In this document: positions 4,691 to 27,790 of the stretch, piece by piece
How positions within the stretch are numbered: the first letter of the stretch is position 1
Layout of the letters: every line of letters begins with the position of its first letter
Sequence record: MZ443780.1
Reading direction: 5' to 3' (one strand)
DNA: 64,000 nt
Notes under the pieces: model-generated
Database searches by the model: none
What the model was told of the DNA's origin: nothing
Seen by the model: the letters and a program-made list of their open reading frames with translations, nothing else
Translations under genes and position numbers: made by a program

Positions 4691-5716
4691 TCATTCCTCC
4701 AATACTCCGCTAATCTCCGAGAACATATTTTTGTACACTAAGGAACCATCTAGCTTGTCCAGTCTAGCAACGAGAACATACAGTCTGGGTGACGTGCGGA
4801 TATTAGCCCACGTCTTCTCATTACGGTCAAGTCCACCAAGCATCGGGACAATGACTATGCTGAGATTTTTGTTTGCCCTGACAAAGCCTACGTCAATGTG
4901 CTTCCTGTTTATACTTCTGAACAGCCTGTTGATTGCGTCCAAACCCACAGGCCGATTAAATTCCGTATCACTGACTGTATTGACTAAGCTGATGAGTATC
5001 CCTTTGTCCTTACCCTCGATCTCAAACAACGCAGCTTTCAGGTCAGCAACCGTCGAAGCGGAGAAGTATGAAACATCGTGGTTATAGTCCTTGAGACAAC
5101 TGCCAAGCGCACGGGCAGATTCGATATGCGCAGCATTGTCATCTCTAAGGATATACACAGGAGCGTCTGCTTGGTAAGTCCGAGCAGTCATGAGATTGAT
5201 AAGATCACAAGAGGGCTTGCCTACTGTGGCTAAGCCCTTATTTGCAATGAAAAACTTATCTTTATACACATCGTAAATGTTTGGTGGCATGTACTTCATG
5301 TAATCATCGTCCAGACTAAGAATCATTCGAGGCTTAGTTAACTGGACGACGAGTTGCATACTACGAAGCGATGCCCTATATTCCGTATCAGACAGAACTC
5401 GACTAATCGGAAGGTATTGTACGACAACGAATCGGTCATCAATCGAATCGACAACCGAACGTATGAGCGTACTGCCTAGCGATGGTCCGGCAGAGAATTG
5501 GGTAACGAGCATCAAGCTATCTTCAACTAAGCCTTTAGACTCTGACAGCGTGATACCGTTACCCGTTTGCTTTACCGAACGCTCCCACGTTATTGTGGGG
5601 TCGTCTCGCTGATCGGCATGTACATCAATTGCGCTACACCAGAGACAGGCTCCAAGAATGTAAGCAGCAATACGTTGTCTGGATCTGCTTCTGCCGGGTT
5701 GACGGTTTCCGGCCAT
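4691..5716 (-). CDS. Exported protein with signal peptide; possibly periplasmic-binding-protein-like fold
   Basis: Strong SD GAGGAG; basic n-region, hydrophobic IAAYILGACLWCSAI, VHA|DQ cleavage-like site; alternating alpha/beta pattern reminiscent of ABC substrate-binding domains (impression only). Confidence 0.6.
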   Translation of the reverse strand: MAGNRQPGRSRSRQRIAAYILGACLWCSAIDVHADQRDDPTITWERSVKQTGNGITLSESKGLVEDSLMLVTQFSAGPSLGSTLIRSVVDSIDDRFVVVQYLPISRVLSDTEYRASLRSMQLVVQLTKPRMILSLDDDYMKYMPPNIYDVYKDKFFIANKGLATVGKPSCDLINLMTARTYQADAPVYILRDDNAAHIESARALGSCLKDYNHDVSYFSASTVADLKAALFEIEGKDKGILISLVNTVSDTEFNRPVGLDAINRLFRSINRKHIDVGFVRANKNLSIVIVPMLGGLDRNEKTWANIRTSPRLYVLVARLDKLDGSLVYKNMFSEISGVLEE

Positions 5717-24581: not shown

Positions 24582-24704
24582 TCAATTCCCTCTTTTCATT
24601 GCTGGAATCTTAGGAGCTTTGGGCAGTTTGAATGGCGCTGGGCTTAACTTGCGCTTGCCTTTAAGCACGTCTAAGTACAAATTCCAATCAGTAGATCTGC
24701 ACAT
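24582..24704 (-). CDS. Small basic Lys/Pro-rich protein (40 aa), not in the ORF track
   Basis: MCRSTDWNLYLDVLKGKRKLSPAPFKLPKAPKIPAMKRGN*; GAGGAG SD about 7 nt upstream; stop abuts the PAAR start. Confidence 0.65.
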   Translation of the reverse strand: MCRSTDWNLYLDVLKGKRKLSPAPFKLPKAPKIPAMKRGN

Positions 24705-24728: not shown

Positions 24729-24736
24729 AAATTAGC
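24729..24736 (-). promoter_or_regulatory. Candidate late promoter motif GCTAATTT
   Basis: Immediately after the terminator at 24751-24780, 25 nt before the 40-aa ORF. Confidence 0.55.
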
Positions 24737-24750
24737 TTGATACGCCCCAG

Positions 24751-24780
24751 AAACAAAAACGGGCGACCCGAAGGCCACCC
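24751..24780 (-). terminator. Intrinsic terminator closing the non-coding region
   Basis: GGGTGGCC-TTCG-GGTCGCCC-GTTTTTGTTT. Confidence 0.8.
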
Positions 24781-25985
24781 AGTTCTTGTGCTTGGAATTT
24801 TGTCGCTTATCCCCTTACGCCCGATGCAAGTGCCACACGTCATTAGACGCGGAGCCGGGATGAATGACCGAGAGTAGTGGCGCACGCCACGCCTGTAAGT
24901 GACTCTCGGGACATGATAGCAAGCGACCAAGCATCGCAATTGCTATCAGCGACAACATGAGCAATATCATTATTGTCGTACTCTCTTTAAACGAACTGGG
25001 TACATCATGGTTTTGATCAGACTACTCCGCTGCCCTTTGCCCAACATCACTAGGGTTTCAGTTTCTTCATCTCTTTACCGCCTACGTTGCGGCGAACCGC
25101 GCACAAGAGCAACACATCAAGAGCACACGGCGGAAAATGGGAAAAGTTCCGTATGCGCTAACAGCATCACTCAAGCGAAGGAGGTGGACGTATCGGTGAT
25201 CTGCGGGAGTTGATACACGTTTTAACAATCGCTATCTTTTGTGCATTAAATCGAAACAGGAACGCGATTGCCCGCTAACATTTCCTGATCGATATTTCAC
25301 ACCCGAGTAAGCGGGTTTTCAGCTATGGCAGTACGTCAGCAGATGGCGGCAGACACACTCCATTGAACACTGTTAAGGGCAGTGCCCAACAGGCTGTGAA
25401 CAGCTTTGACCAAACGTAGAGTCGCTCGTCGCCCAACATCACTTGAGTATCTCGTCTACATTCTTTTACTCCCTAACGCCGGTACAAGGAAGTCCGACGC
25501 CATGAGGGTCTGCGGATGTTTATCACTCTAAGACTCTTCCAACTTATCCCCATACGCAGTGAATCGAGTCGTCCGCTGGATAACTCACTGCGTACCCGTC
25601 AATGCGTCGTGCGACATTGAGGAATAGTCGGTGGAAACTTTTATCATGGAGAGTAGATATCTCCCCAATGCACACTGTTATTGCCAGCCAATGTGCATCA
25701 GGCAGCGTAACTGCAAACTGCTATCCCTATAAGAGAGGCCACAACGCTGGTGGTACGTTCCGCCTGTCTACGCGCCTAGAGGCAAATTGCCGTGCCATGT
25801 CTGTGCAAGAATACCAGCTGGGCCTTGTAAGCGTCAGCAGCAGAGCAATAGTCTATCGCGTGGTTGCCGGGGTTATCCTCACGATTACAGAGCGCGAACT
25901 CAAACCGGCTGGAGGCTCGTCACTGATAAACGGCAGCGACAAGTTTAATACCAGACAGCACCCGCTAAGTATACTGTCTGGCTGA
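24781..25985 (-). ncRNA. Candidate large (~1.2 kb) highly structured non-coding RNA, family unassigned
   Basis: No credible ORF; near-continuous inverted repeats (e.g. 25951-58/25974-81, 25553-62/25585-94, 24914-22/24940-48, 24868-75/24902-09, UUCG hairpin 25089-25100); ends at a terminator. Strand inferred from terminator orientation and UUCG loops; 5' end uncertain. Confidence 0.6.
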
Positions 25986-26026
25986 GACATAATGATATTA
26001 CTATCTGCAATTTTTATTTACAGATT

Positions 26027-27790
26027 TTAGAACGCCTTACGCTCAACATTTGAATAAAGTGTATCGTAAGGTTCAGAGTACAGTTCAGGTCCTCGTTGTG
26101 CGCGAATCGTCACGTAACCTGTATGACGGTTAAACGCTGTGATTTCGACTGTAGGCTGTTTAGGCTTGATAGTCGCATAAATCGGAGCATTCAGTGTAGG
26201 CTCGTCTGTCTGAATCTTATTTACAGATTGCAGAGCAGCACCAGAAACAGTCGGCAAGTTGAAACGCAGTTCAGCACGTTTCTGACCGAACGCAGCGCGA
26301 ATCATACCACGCTCCATCTCTACGCCATTCTGTTTGAGGTATGCAGCAATGCGACGAGCAATACCGGTCAACTGGTCACGAGTACGAGGGTCGAATGTAC
26401 CTTCGAAACTGATTGCTTCCGGCGGCTGACGCACGGACAGATGCAGACCAGTGTTGAAGTAACCCTCAGTCAGAAGACGCAGCACTTCTTTTACGACTTC
26501 TTGCGTGTTTGGTTTGATTGCAGCGATGCGCAGCTCAGGCACATCTACTTTGACCGGGTCGCGCAGCTCAGTTTGGTTATCCATGTAACCGAGAGACACA
26601 TGCTTTGCGTTTGCATACGTGTGCTGCAATACGCCAGTAGCACGAATCAGAACAGAGCCGCCTTTAGCAATGTCGTAGAGTTCGTCGCTGGTGGTTGTGC
26701 TGAACAGGTAGTAGTCTGTAGGCACTGCCATGCGATTAACCGCTTCGACTGCTTTGGTCTGTACTTCTTTTACAGTTTTACCGAAGACTATACGACTACG
26801 GTTAGGCTGAGAAGCAGACACAGGGAAGAATGCGCCGTAAACAACTTCGACGTTCTTCTTGATAGGACGCTCAGATGGAACCTTAGTGCCACCAGACAGA
26901 GGAGGCAGCTTCACGCCCACCAGCTTGCCTTTGACGATAGCTTTGTTTTCTTTGAAAGGCTTGAGGCCGTCAATCACTTTCGCCAGATCAGCACCGCTAA
27001 GAATCTTCTCCAGCGGAACAGCGAGGTTCTGCGGCAAATAGTGTTTCTTGCGATACGAGTAGATTACGGTGTCTTTCTTGATCTGAATAGGCGTTGCCAT
27101 ATTGCGACCAATAACACCGACCGGCTGGAACGTGTTTGCTTTGTCGTCAGCGATTGTGCCATAAGCCTTCGTGAACTCAGTCTGGCCGATGATGTTCGCA
27201 GCACGTAAGTGACCACGAATGATAAACACAATCTTCGGTTCGTCTTTCAGGCGCAGCTCGTAGCGGTCACGGTTCAGGTAAACCATGCTGTACTTGTCGC
27301 CTTTCTCCAGTTCGAGATCGTACTCATCGTTAGCGTCATCGACAACGACTTTCTTACCCTGATACGTAGAGTAGGTGCGAGCGCCCGCAGACTCAGAAGC
27401 AATCTCCAGTGCCTTGCCTGTATTAGACAGCGCAACTGCGAAGTCCATAACGGCGGGCATCAGGTCGAATGAAGATGCTACTGCATACGGTTTGCGTTTC
27501 GGACCGAGCTGAACGTGTACTGCACTACTGCTGGACATGAACACGGTATTGCCTGTGTCCTCATGAGTACCAGCGAAGTGCATACCACTAATGCGCTCGA
27601 TGATGTTCGCGTTGAGTGAAGGGAATGCAATATCGCTACCGGCAGTGAAGTCATAAATTTCACCGTTGCGCCATGCGTATGCGACATTGTTCGAACTAAG
27701 ACCTACAAACGCATCACCCAGCTGGCGAATCGTCAGCGGCATAATGCTTAGGTCACGAATGACTCTGTGTTGCTTTTGAATGAGGTTCAT
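26027..27790 (-). CDS. Hypothetical, probably head-associated protein (587 aa) carrying the shared ~60-aa module
   Basis: Long ORF; SESA followed by TYQGKK...LEKGDKYSM...YELRLKDEPKIVF. Confidence 0.7.
   Translation of the reverse strand: MNLIQKQHRVIRDLSIMPLTIRQLGDAFVGLSSNNVAYAWRNGEIYDFTAGSDIAFPSLNANIIERISGMHFAGTHEDTGNTVFMSSSSAVHVQLGPKRKPYAVASSFDLMPAVMDFAVALSNTGKALEIASESAGARTYSTYQGKKVVVDDANDEYDLELEKGDKYSMVYLNRDRYELRLKDEPKIVFIIRGHLRAANIIGQTEFTKAYGTIADDKANTFQPVGVIGRNMATPIQIKKDTVIYSYRKKHYLPQNLAVPLEKILSGADLAKVIDGLKPFKENKAIVKGKLVGVKLPPLSGGTKVPSERPIKKNVEVVYGAFFPVSASQPNRSRIVFGKTVKEVQTKAVEAVNRMAVPTDYYLFSTTTSDELYDIAKGGSVLIRATGVLQHTYANAKHVSLGYMDNQTELRDPVKVDVPELRIAAIKPNTQEVVKEVLRLLTEGYFNTGLHLSVRQPPEAISFEGTFDPRTRDQLTGIARRIAAYLKQNGVEMERGMIRAAFGQKRAELRFNLPTVSGAALQSVNKIQTDEPTLNAPIYATIKPKQPTVEITAFNRHTGYVTIRAQRGPELYSEPYDTLYSNVERKAF

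Follow-up and report, generated by a model that had tools for sequence, protein, structure and literature searches.

A giant structured RNA without a match among known RNA families, conserved between two genes of Erwinia phage pEa_SNUABM_40 and related jumbo phages

Genomic context and organisation of the locus

The DNA analysed, hereafter the window, is a 64,000-nucleotide stretch of the genome of the jumbo phage pEa_SNUABM_40 (genus Alexandravirus; MZ443780.1), which infects Erwinia. Between the stop codon of a gene encoding a 587-aa protein (26027) and the genes for a 40-aa ORF and a PAAR protein (24704/24580), no conserved long ORF is found, and all genes are co-oriented. The interval lies at the border between nucleotide-metabolism genes (dTMP kinase, MmcB-like) and baseplate genes, and not inside the morphogenesis region, as the initial annotation had placed it; nor is it the only gap over 100 nt, as had been claimed, since another annotation gap of 290 nt lies at 5300-5589. 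The features of the locus are as follows.

24749..26005 (-), predicted transcript of the large structured RNA (~1.25 kb); the 5' end is inferred and the 3' end is at the terminator U-tract
25994..26026 (-), promoter-like motif AATCTGTAAATAAAAATTGCAGATAGTAATATC, directly after the stop of the 587-aa gene
25950..25982 (-), 5'-terminal hairpin of ~12 bp with the conserved loop (A)CUUAGCGGG
25596..25943 (-), 5' domain with hairpin H4 (25916-25943) and a multi-branched domain (helices 5-22), including the invariant CCUCCAGC, UGUAAU and AACCCC stretches and a paralogue of the module-1 hairpins at 25665-25714
25553..25594 (-), hairpin H23/H24, the loop of which, GCGGA (25576-25572), can pair with UCCGC (25516-25512) in a pseudoknot-like manner
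25358..25527 (-), module 1, with AGUGAUAAACAUCCGCAG, helices 28-34, the invariant motif GAUACUCAAGUGAUGUUGGGCGACG (25427-25451) and a hairpin with the invariant loop UGCCCUUAACA (25371-25381)
25015..25204 (-), module 2, with the invariant GCAGAUCACCGAU (25204-25192), single-stranded CCUCCUUCGCU (25184-25174), helices 43-49, the GCGG-UUCG-CCGC hairpin, AGGCGGUAA and a second copy of the AGUGAUGUUGGGC motif (25033-25059)
24815..24970 (-), small ORF of 51 aa with an N-terminal hydrophobic helix, the mRNA of which is itself folded into covarying hairpins (helices 50-57, 24809-24985)
24749..24786 (-), intrinsic terminator (GGGUGGCC-UUCG-GGUCGCCC plus a U-tract)
24729..24736 (-), GCTAATTT, a second promoter-like element heading the 40-aa ORF/PAAR/baseplate genes, outside the RNA unit
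24582..24704 (-), 40-aa ORF, present in only some relatives and not part of the RNA
25602..25985 (+), CDS annotated in GenBank (127 aa), antisense to the RNA and judged spurious

Conservation of the element

Homologous gaps of ~1.3 kb lie at the same site, between the 587-aa gene and the PAAR gene, in all Alexandravirus genomes and in Sasquatchvirus, and 46 phage records hold the element, one copy each. A nucleotide profile search with nhmmer gave a full-length hit in phage Y3 (E = 4e-138), and a covariance model built on module 1 (R1) hit the syntenic site in five other lineages, with 90.6 bits in S34, 42.6 in Y3, 25.6 in JA33, 22.4 in JA29 and 18.1 in SNUABM_5; covariance-model hits extend the distribution to Salmondvirus and Rivsvirus. 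Model R1 found nothing significant in Yoloswag, and it was not applied to the Yersinia phage, the record of which is split inside the region. A scan of genome contigs with a motif pattern gave 20 hits in unrelated phyla, which were taken as chance and not followed up, while a scan with the motif of the distant genera found only the known isolates plus one metagenome contig. The carriers infect Erwinia, Dickeya and Yersinia.

Covariation, strand and coding capacity

The absence of covariation, a folding energy no better than that of controls, a strong Rfam hit and function as a DNA element had each been named beforehand as outcomes that would count against a structured RNA, and each was examined. 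In an alignment of 14 sequences (51-93% identical), 360 predicted pairs in 58 helices are 92.9% canonical, against 35-42% when the partners are slid, and 151 pairs show compensatory double changes, against 34-58 when slid; 0 of 500 shuffles reach any of these measures. The 1 kb outside the ORF alone contains 271 pairs, of which 123 have double changes, again with 0 of 500 shuffles reaching this. The structure was predicted on the same alignment that was used for counting and only about 8 independent lineages are available, but the first concern is mitigated by a held-out test, in which a structure predicted from one clade holds in 80% of cells in the other clade, against 36-42%, with 138 pairs doubly changed. 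G-U pairs make up 13.9% of cells, so the mirrored structure on the other strand drops to 80.8%, which fixes the minus strand as the RNA strand. No codon periodicity was detected, the period-3 ratio being at most 1.3, against 9-29 in the neighbouring gene. Together, the compensatory changes, the strand-specific G-U pairs and the lack of a coding signature are those of a structured non-coding RNA.

The folding-energy evidence is weaker than the initial annotation implied. The full-length minimum free energy z-score is -4.4 to -4.5 in three lineages, against -0.3 to -1.4 for coding controls, but the first 1000 nt give only z = -1.6, and 250-nt windows average -0.8, against -0.5 in coding sequence, so that local z-scores do not distinguish the region from coding sequence.

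The observation of a large, densely base-paired gap held, and of the individual helices proposed at first that were checked, four were recovered. The 10-bp stem 25553-62/25585-94 is helix 23, all 10 of its 10 pairs showing double compensatory changes; 24914-22/24940-48 is part of a 13-bp helix 52 with 6 covarying pairs; GCGG-UUCG-CCGC (25100-25089) is helix 47, 100% paired; and the G-U-rich 12-bp helix 25330-25359 is helix 35. The proposed long-range 8-bp pairing of 25101-08 with 24784-91 is rejected, since those bases pair elsewhere (helix 45 and the terminator) and do not covary. The description of the whole interval as non-coding holds for about 1.03 kb only, because the last ~160 nt carry the conserved 51-aa ORF.

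The CDS annotated in GenBank on the plus strand has 1-7 stops in every frame in 11 of the 13 relatives and no period-3 signal; spurious CDS are called across this element in several GenBank records, on either strand, and the present analysis corrects these annotations.

Structural architecture of the RNA

A long 5'-terminal hairpin (6-14 bp) forms in all 9 homologues folded, with different stem sequences, and has z = -4.2 in the window; its conserved loop is kept in the seven Alexandravirus sequences but not in the two most divergent. In the 5' domain, helices 4, 7, 11-13, 15 and 18 have 3-9 covarying pairs each. The pairing of the H23/H24 loop covaries as GCGGA/UCCGC, GCGGG/CCCGC and GCAGG/CCUGC. 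In module 1, helices 28, 30 and 34 have 7-8 covarying pairs each. Paralogy of module 2 to module 1 is indicated by a local alignment (z = 6.6) and by an R1 hit (E = 0.016), and a further R1 hit lies at 25665-25714 (E = 0.003); the RNA is built from two or three tandem paralogous modules with invariant loops; the Yersinia phage has two ~275-nt units with an alignment z of 21.8. A CCUCCUU motif resembling an anti-Shine-Dalgarno sequence is invariant in Alexandravirus but absent in Y3; it is therefore not a universal feature, and no function is assigned to it.

The small ORF is open in all 18 homologues at 47-53 aa, with in-frame indels and an AGGAG Shine-Dalgarno in most, and it is conserved at the protein level in Y3, Yoloswag, SNUABM_5 and JA33/JA29; searches against Pfam and PHROG placed it in no family. 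No supported base pairs link the 1-kb body to the ORF segment. The terminator was found by a scan, with its UUCG hairpin at 24781-24760; helix 58, which forms it, is 98.9% paired, and its loop varies between UUCG and AUUA.

Comparison with known RNA families and systems

Searches of 4,227 Rfam 15 families, including GOLLD, ROOL, OLE, HEARO, raiA, RNase P, tmRNA, rRNA, group I/II introns and riboswitches, returned no match at the gathering threshold in the whole window; at permissive thresholds (E < 10), only 5 chance-level hits of 15-21 bits (E = 0.4-5) were seen in the region, and five homologous loci gave no hits with E < 1. No tRNA or tmRNA was found in the 64-kb window. Literature searches revealed no report of this RNA.

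The GOLLD and ROOL RNAs of prophages and phages of Firmicutes are likewise phage-borne, many hundreds of nucleotides long, with dozens of covarying helices and unknown function, and were found first by comparative genomics; cryo-EM shows that they self-assemble into multimers (bioRxiv 10.1101/2024.12.08.627333). The present element matches neither Rfam model, has no neighbouring tRNAs, whereas GOLLD and ROOL are frequently associated with tRNA genes, is carried by lytic jumbo phages of Gram-negative Enterobacterales, is longer (~1.0-1.25 kb), and has tandem paralogous modules and a small ORF at the 3' end; RNA-only multimeric assembly, a property of GOLLD, ROOL and OLE, was not assayed here. 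OLE RNA and its membrane partner OapA offer a parallel, in that a large structured RNA gene lies immediately next to a gene for a small membrane protein in conserved synteny, suggesting a membrane-associated ribonucleoprotein; this comparison is not a test, and no interaction has been shown here. OLE is chromosomal in extremophilic Firmicutes, its model gives no match, and the protein found here is a single-pass 51-aa peptide with no Pfam family.

The 3' ORF segment alone resembles type I toxin mRNAs such as hok/sok, having a ~50-aa hydrophobic peptide encoded in a tightly folded mRNA, helices that covary inside the coding region and a sequestered ribosome-binding site. There is no match to any Pfam family, including Hok/Gef, and no convincing Rfam antitoxin RNA (the fstAT hit has E = 5.2); as an antisense RNA was not looked for and toxicity was not measured, these observations do not settle whether the segment belongs to such a system, and the 1-kb upstream body has no counterpart there. 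Sponges such as CsrB/RsmB also present the same loop sequence several times on one RNA by means of a repeated structural unit, but a CsrA-type sponge is unlikely, since GGA motifs are not enriched (14 in 1286 nt, against about 21 expected), there are only two or three repeats of a large (~300-390 nt) module, and no Rfam match was found.

Possible function and alternative interpretations

The core of the initial interpretation, a new large structured RNA on the minus strand that starts after the AT-rich motif, ends at the UUCG terminator and belongs to no known family, is supported. The analysis itself demonstrates that the ~1.25-kb interval is a gene for a very large, highly structured RNA read from the minus strand; that selection acts on its base pairs, and not on a reading frame or on double-stranded DNA; that the RNA has a 5' hairpin, a branched 5' domain and two or three tandem paralogous modules, each displaying invariant unpaired sequences (AAGUGAUGUUGGGCGA twice, UGCCCUUAACA, and CCGCAGAYC twice); and that the 3' ~240 nt fold on their own and contain the conserved 51-aa membrane-protein ORF followed by the intrinsic terminator. 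What follows is deduced from this evidence and is less certain. The element is probably a separate transcription unit, as the AATCTGTAAATA motif that heads it lies just after the upstream gene, following or bracketing a terminator-like hairpin in the sister genera, and the baseplate genes downstream have their own GCTAATTT element; a terminator is present, but the promoter is only a conserved motif in a suggestive position, and with no expression data of any kind, the transcript ends, abundance and timing are all inferred and the independence of the unit is left undecided. The 1-kb body would work in trans as a folded RNA, most likely as a scaffold that binds a phage or host protein through the repeated invariant loops, or that self-assembles, and it may act together with the co-regulated small membrane protein encoded next to it. 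The ORF segment would be a structured mRNA whose Shine-Dalgarno is sequestered, which would time or limit translation. The probability of this reading is estimated at about 0.6; the function is unknown, the suggested roles as virion RNA, decoy or scaffold were not tested, and nothing identifies a binding partner.

The main alternative, considered unlikely but not excluded, is that the 1-kb structure is a giant cis-acting leader, the 5' untranslated region of the small membrane-protein mRNA, controlling when and how much of the protein is made, for example by folding kinetics, processing or alternative pairings. In Alexandravirus the small ORF has no promoter-like motif of its own, and in Alexandravirus and Sasquatchvirus the only such motif upstream of the ORF is the one at the RNA start; the Shine-Dalgarno and start codon are enclosed in helix 50, mutually exclusive covarying pairings exist around CCCGC 25207-25203, and the adjacency of RNA and ORF is conserved in six genera. 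Set against this are the lack of supported pairs between the body and the ORF segment and the situation in Yoloswag and JA33, where the ORF has its own copy of the motif and is separated from the RNA by other genes; moreover, cis-regulatory leaders of this size and complexity, with about 45 helices and duplicated modules, are not known. It is still less likely that the element is the structured 3' untranslated region of the 587-aa gene's mRNA, or a processed product of it, lacking a promoter and serving mainly to stabilise or terminate that transcript. In the window the motif starts 1 nt after the stop codon with no terminator between them, and all genes are co-oriented, but a terminator-like hairpin with a U-tract separates the 587-aa gene from the motif in Yoloswag and SNUABM_5, while in JA33 the hairpin follows the first copy of the motif and a second copy lies beyond it; the motif recurs in front of the small ORF elsewhere, and a 1.2-kb element with 120+ covarying pairs and invariant loops seems far more than stabilisation needs.

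Two further readings are very improbable. A DNA-level element, such as a replication origin, a packaging site or a set of protein-binding iterons, might be suggested by the internal repeats and invariant short motifs, which could be binding sites; however, compensatory changes preserve pairing, the G-U pairs are mismatches on the other strand, no AT-rich or skew anomaly and no tandem iterons were found, and a promoter-like motif and a terminator bracket the element. Decayed or unrecognised coding sequence, a self-splicing intron or another mobile element might explain why different annotators called short ORFs here, but these ORFs are not conserved, there is no period-3 substitution pattern, and Rfam finds no group I or group II intron; the flanking genes are complete and of constant length in all relatives, and no reverse transcriptase or homing endonuclease is nearby.

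Perhaps, and this remains a tentative suggestion somewhat less likely than not, the element represents a previously undescribed class of giant (1.0-1.25 kb) ornate RNA specific to a clade of Enterobacterales jumbo phages and built from tandem paralogous modules, which folds or assembles into a higher-order particle during infection, either alone or with the co-regulated 51-aa membrane protein or another phage or host protein; it would be the first such RNA in genetically tractable Gram-negative phage-host pairs. Very few bacterial or phage RNAs longer than 600 nt are known apart from rRNA and introns, and the functions of GOLLD, ROOL and OLE are open questions. The present element adds a new and even larger family, supported by more than 120 covarying base pairs in the non-ORF body, in cultured lytic phages of Erwinia amylovora, Dickeya solani and Yersinia, which can be grown, engineered and purified, making the function of a giant ornate RNA directly testable by deletion, pull-down and cryo-EM.

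Neighbouring protein and promoter-like elements

For the upstream 587-aa protein, domain searches found only a KMPT-N domain and no PDB relatives; the AlphaFold model was poor (pLDDT 53), and Foldseek gave nothing below E = 0.02. Homologues of the 40-aa ORF lie upstream of the PAAR gene in Yoloswag and SNUABM_5, but the ORF is absent from most Alexandraviruses.

The AT-rich motif at 26026-25994 is invariant in Alexandravirus and in 13 of 14 lineages, and nearly unique in the 64-kb window. Its AATCTGTAAATAnnAATT core follows the 587-aa homologue, after a terminator hairpin, in Yoloswag and SNUABM_5, while in JA33/JA29 it abuts the stop of that gene and the hairpin lies downstream of it; the core also heads the small ORF in some genera. 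Its function as a promoter is inferred and was not assayed, and a sigma-70 promoter scan found no minus-strand promoter; phage-encoded sigma factors have been reported for PaBG and its 'Lupandier' group, in which AD1, the JA phages, Y3, Yoloswag and Alexandra were placed (PMC7412058). The GCTAATTT element occurs in six copies in the window, all on the minus strand, against 1.3 expected, and four of these lie just upstream of genes; the two motifs represent two candidate promoter classes for this phage group.

Genomic context and conservation of the intergenic region

Over the region, the window is 100% identical to Erwinia phage pEa_SNUABM_40, a 267-kb jumbo phage of the genus Alexandravirus. 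All genes around the element lie on the minus strand. Upstream, in the direction of transcription, are the genes of a MmcB-like protein, a dTMP kinase, a 144-aa protein and a 587-aa protein, whose only recognisable part is a KMPT-N domain; downstream are a 40-aa ORF, the gene of a PAAR spike-tip protein and baseplate wedge genes. The 40-aa ORF (24582-24704), directly upstream of the PAAR gene, is present in only some Alexandraviruses, but has protein homologues at the same place in Yoloswag and SNUABM_5, and is probably a real accessory gene. The element therefore sits at the border between a nucleotide-metabolism block and the baseplate block, and not inside the morphogenesis genes, where the initial annotation had placed it.

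The gap that the initial annotation had observed is real. No ORF of any length is conserved across 24971-26026, and the 127-aa plus-strand CDS annotated in GenBank at 25602-25985 carries stops in every frame in 11 of the 13 relatives. It is not, however, the only gap over 100 nt, as had been claimed, since a 290-nt stretch at 5300-5589, the content of which was not analysed, has no annotated gene in the GenBank record either. A blastn search found the region in 46 phage records, once per genome, at 60-80% identity in most of them. In every Alexandravirus the same ~1.3-kb gap lies between the 587-aa gene and the PAAR gene, and the same is true of a sister group (SNUABM_34, _14, _7) and of two metagenome lineages. 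Pairwise identity among 14 non-redundant copies ranges from 51 to 93%. The neighbouring gene is 69-84% identical at the nucleotide level, with the usual third-codon-position excess, whereas the gap shows no period-3 signal at all (ratio at most 1.3, against 9-29 in the gene).

Evidence for a conserved RNA structure

Absence of covariation had been named in advance as grounds for rejecting a structured RNA. RNAalifold, applied to the alignment of the 14 sequences (A1), gave 360 pairs in 58 helices. Standard pairs are formed in 92.9% of cells, against 35-42% when the 3' partners are slid by 1-3 columns; 151 pairs have changes on both sides, against 34-58 when slid; and the covariation score is 0.305, against 0.04-0.09 when slid. 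None of 500 column shuffles reached any of the five measures, and thirty-one helices have at least two compensatory pairs. Restricting the count to the ~1 kb upstream of the small ORF gave 271 pairs, 92.1% paired, 123 with double changes, again with 0 of 500 shuffles.

Because the structure was predicted on the same alignment, a held-out test was conducted. A structure predicted from the seven sequences of the window's clade is kept in 80% of cells in the seven other sequences, against 36-42% when slid, and 138 of its pairs are doubly changed there; the single-sequence MFE structure of the window itself is kept in 75% of cells in the others. A 5' hairpin that the alignment had scrambled forms in all nine homologues folded separately, with unrelated stem sequences; its loop is conserved in the seven Alexandravirus sequences, but not in the two most divergent ones.

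Of the paired cells, 13.9% are G-U or U-G, and the mirrored structure on the plus strand falls to 80.8% paired. The full-length MFE z-score is -4.5 on the minus strand and -1.1 on the plus strand. The RNA is therefore on the minus strand, co-directional with the genes.

Folding energy, another criterion set beforehand, gave a less uniform picture. The full-length z-score is -4.4 to -4.5 in three divergent lineages, while four coding controls of equal length gave -0.3 to -1.4. However, the first 1000 nt gave only -1.6, and windows of 250 nt average -0.8, against -0.5 in coding sequence; much of the excess comes from the 3' 250 nt. The case rests on covariation, not on stability.

Boundaries of the element

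The 33-nt sequence AATCTGTAAATAAAAATTGCAGATAGTAATATC begins one base after the stop codon of the 587-aa gene; it is unique in the window and invariant in Alexandravirus. Its core, AATCTGTAAATAnnAATT, follows the 587-aa homologue in Sasquatchvirus, Yoloswagvirus, Rivsvirus, Salmondvirus and a Yersinia phage. In Yoloswag and SNUABM_5 it comes after a terminator-like hairpin; in JA33/JA29 the first copy abuts the stop codon, the hairpin follows it, and a second copy lies beyond. The core recurs in front of the small ORF in Yoloswag and JA33. Phage-encoded sigma factors have been reported for the group in which the study of phage PaBG places these phages (PMC7412058); a phage-specific promoter is therefore the natural reading, but this is inference. 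A second AATCTGTAAATA lies inside the 587-aa gene (26216-26227, minus strand), about 200 nt upstream of the RNA start motif, with no known significance.

An intrinsic terminator lies at 24786-24749; its stem is 98.9% paired and its loop varies. Thirteen bases further on lies GCTAATTT, a motif that occurs six times in the window (4662, 7851, 24729, 30314, 43314 and 58048, minus strand), always on the coding strand, against 1.3 expected. Four copies lie in short spacers just upstream of genes, and the motif probably represents a phage promoter class distinct from the AATCTGTAAATA motif. The baseplate genes thus appear to have their own start signal, and in this reading the RNA unit stands alone.

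Architecture of the predicted RNA

From 5' to 3' (minus strand), the RNA contains the following elements:
25982-25950, a terminal hairpin
hairpin H4
25915-25596, a branched 5' domain
hairpin H23, in which all ten pairs covary
25527-25358, module 1
a G-U-rich hairpin
a small branched domain
25204-25015, module 2
the ORF segment

Modules 1 and 2 share CCGCAGAYC, a purine-rich GUAAARGA stretch and the nearly identical loop AGUGAUGUUGGGCGA, 392 nt apart, and their local alignment gives z = 6.6. The two-hairpin end of module 1, including the invariant loop UGCCCUUAACA, has a paralogue in the 5' domain, which is scored at E = 0.003 by R1, a covariance model built from module 1, and aligns with z = 5.4. 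In Yersinia phage fHe-Yen9-02 the duplication is plain, and two ~275-nt tandem units align with z = 21.8; the GenBank record of this phage is linearised inside the homologous RNA region (loci L073, 1-663, and L074, 2083-3079), and seven CDS of 30-63 aa are called across it, most of them probably spurious.

Two further helices outside the nested model covary. One is GCGGG/CCCGC (25275-25271 with 25207-25203, four variants), which competes with helix 37; the other is GCGGA/UCCGC (25576-25572 with 25516-25512), a loop-to-strand pairing. In the former region (25304-25299, 25275-25271 and 25210-25203), CCCGC can pair with either of two upstream G-rich strands, and both alternatives covary; this may be a conformational switch. 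The RNA also contains invariant unpaired stretches; one of them, CCUCCUUCGC, resembles the anti-Shine-Dalgarno sequence, but it is lost in Y3.

The small ORF

Positions 24970-24815 encode 51 aa with a hydrophobic N-terminal helix. The frame is open in all 18 homologues at 47-53 aa, despite in-frame indels of 3 and 15 nt, and an AGGAG lies 5-7 nt before the ATG in most of them. Recognisable protein homologues, with the same N-terminal helix and a shared AHVRGMW end, exist in Yoloswag, SNUABM_5, JA33/JA29 and the S34 group, while Y3 keeps the helix but ends ...HSLRV, like the Alexandraviruses. It is therefore a real gene, although it matches no family. Its mRNA is itself folded into helices with 2-6 compensatory pairs each, and these helices drive amino-acid changes in the C-terminal half; no supported pairing connects this segment to the 1-kb body. 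Between the RNA body and the small ORF (A1 columns ~1150-1175), most relatives (loci L002-L007, L045 and L030 of the alignment) carry a perfect palindrome, ACAUUUGCAAAUGU, followed by UUUU, which the window itself lacks; it could be a weak internal terminator or an operator.

Comparison with known RNAs and interpretation

A strong match to a known Rfam family had been stated beforehand as an outcome that would count against a new RNA. Searches of Rfam 15 gave nothing at gathering scores, only chance-level hits at E up to 10 in the region, and nothing below E = 1 in five homologous loci. Full-text searches found no description of the element. GOLLD, ROOL and OLE are the nearest in kind, being large ornate RNAs of unknown function, and the adjacency to a membrane-protein gene recalls OLE and OapA, but every membership feature that could be tested failed. 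The interpretation of the element in the initial annotation as a new large structured RNA is supported: this is a genuine, new and very large structured RNA family, to which no function has been assigned and which is highly worth experimental follow-up.

The analysis demonstrates a fold selected at the RNA level, modular duplication, invariant loops, a bracketing terminator and a co-located conserved small ORF. The existence of its own promoter, and action in trans as a scaffold or ribonucleoprotein RNA, are inferences. Trans action is suggested by a size and complexity beyond any known cis-regulator, by repeated identical loops, which suit multivalent binding or self-association, and by structural and, in sister genera, transcriptional independence from the ORF. 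The main rival is a giant leader for the small ORF, whereas readings of the element as a DNA element, a pseudogene or an intron are effectively excluded.

Breadth of the family

An nhmmer search aligned the whole RNA in Sasquatchvirus Y3, which is 58% identical (E = 4e-138). Model R1 hit the syntenic position on the right strand in the S34 group (90.6 bits), Y3 (42.6), JA33 (25.6, E = 3e-5), JA29 (22.4) and SNUABM_5 (18.1, E = 0.003), while the result for Yoloswag is not significant. Two contigs of one IMG/VR metagenome (3300013825, contigs 9 and 7; the end of locus L028 and the start of L030) end and begin inside the RNA and overlap by about 100 nt, which is an assembly break, possibly caused by the internal repeats. 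In the more distant genera, other small genes lie between the RNA and the membrane-protein ORF; in the sister-genus loci L068 (5985-6775), L069 (6031-6661), L070 (6013-6324) and L071 (6280-6591), small proteins sharing the motif SAEKSAGLRKLLEA(K/Q)DC are inserted there, sometimes twice.
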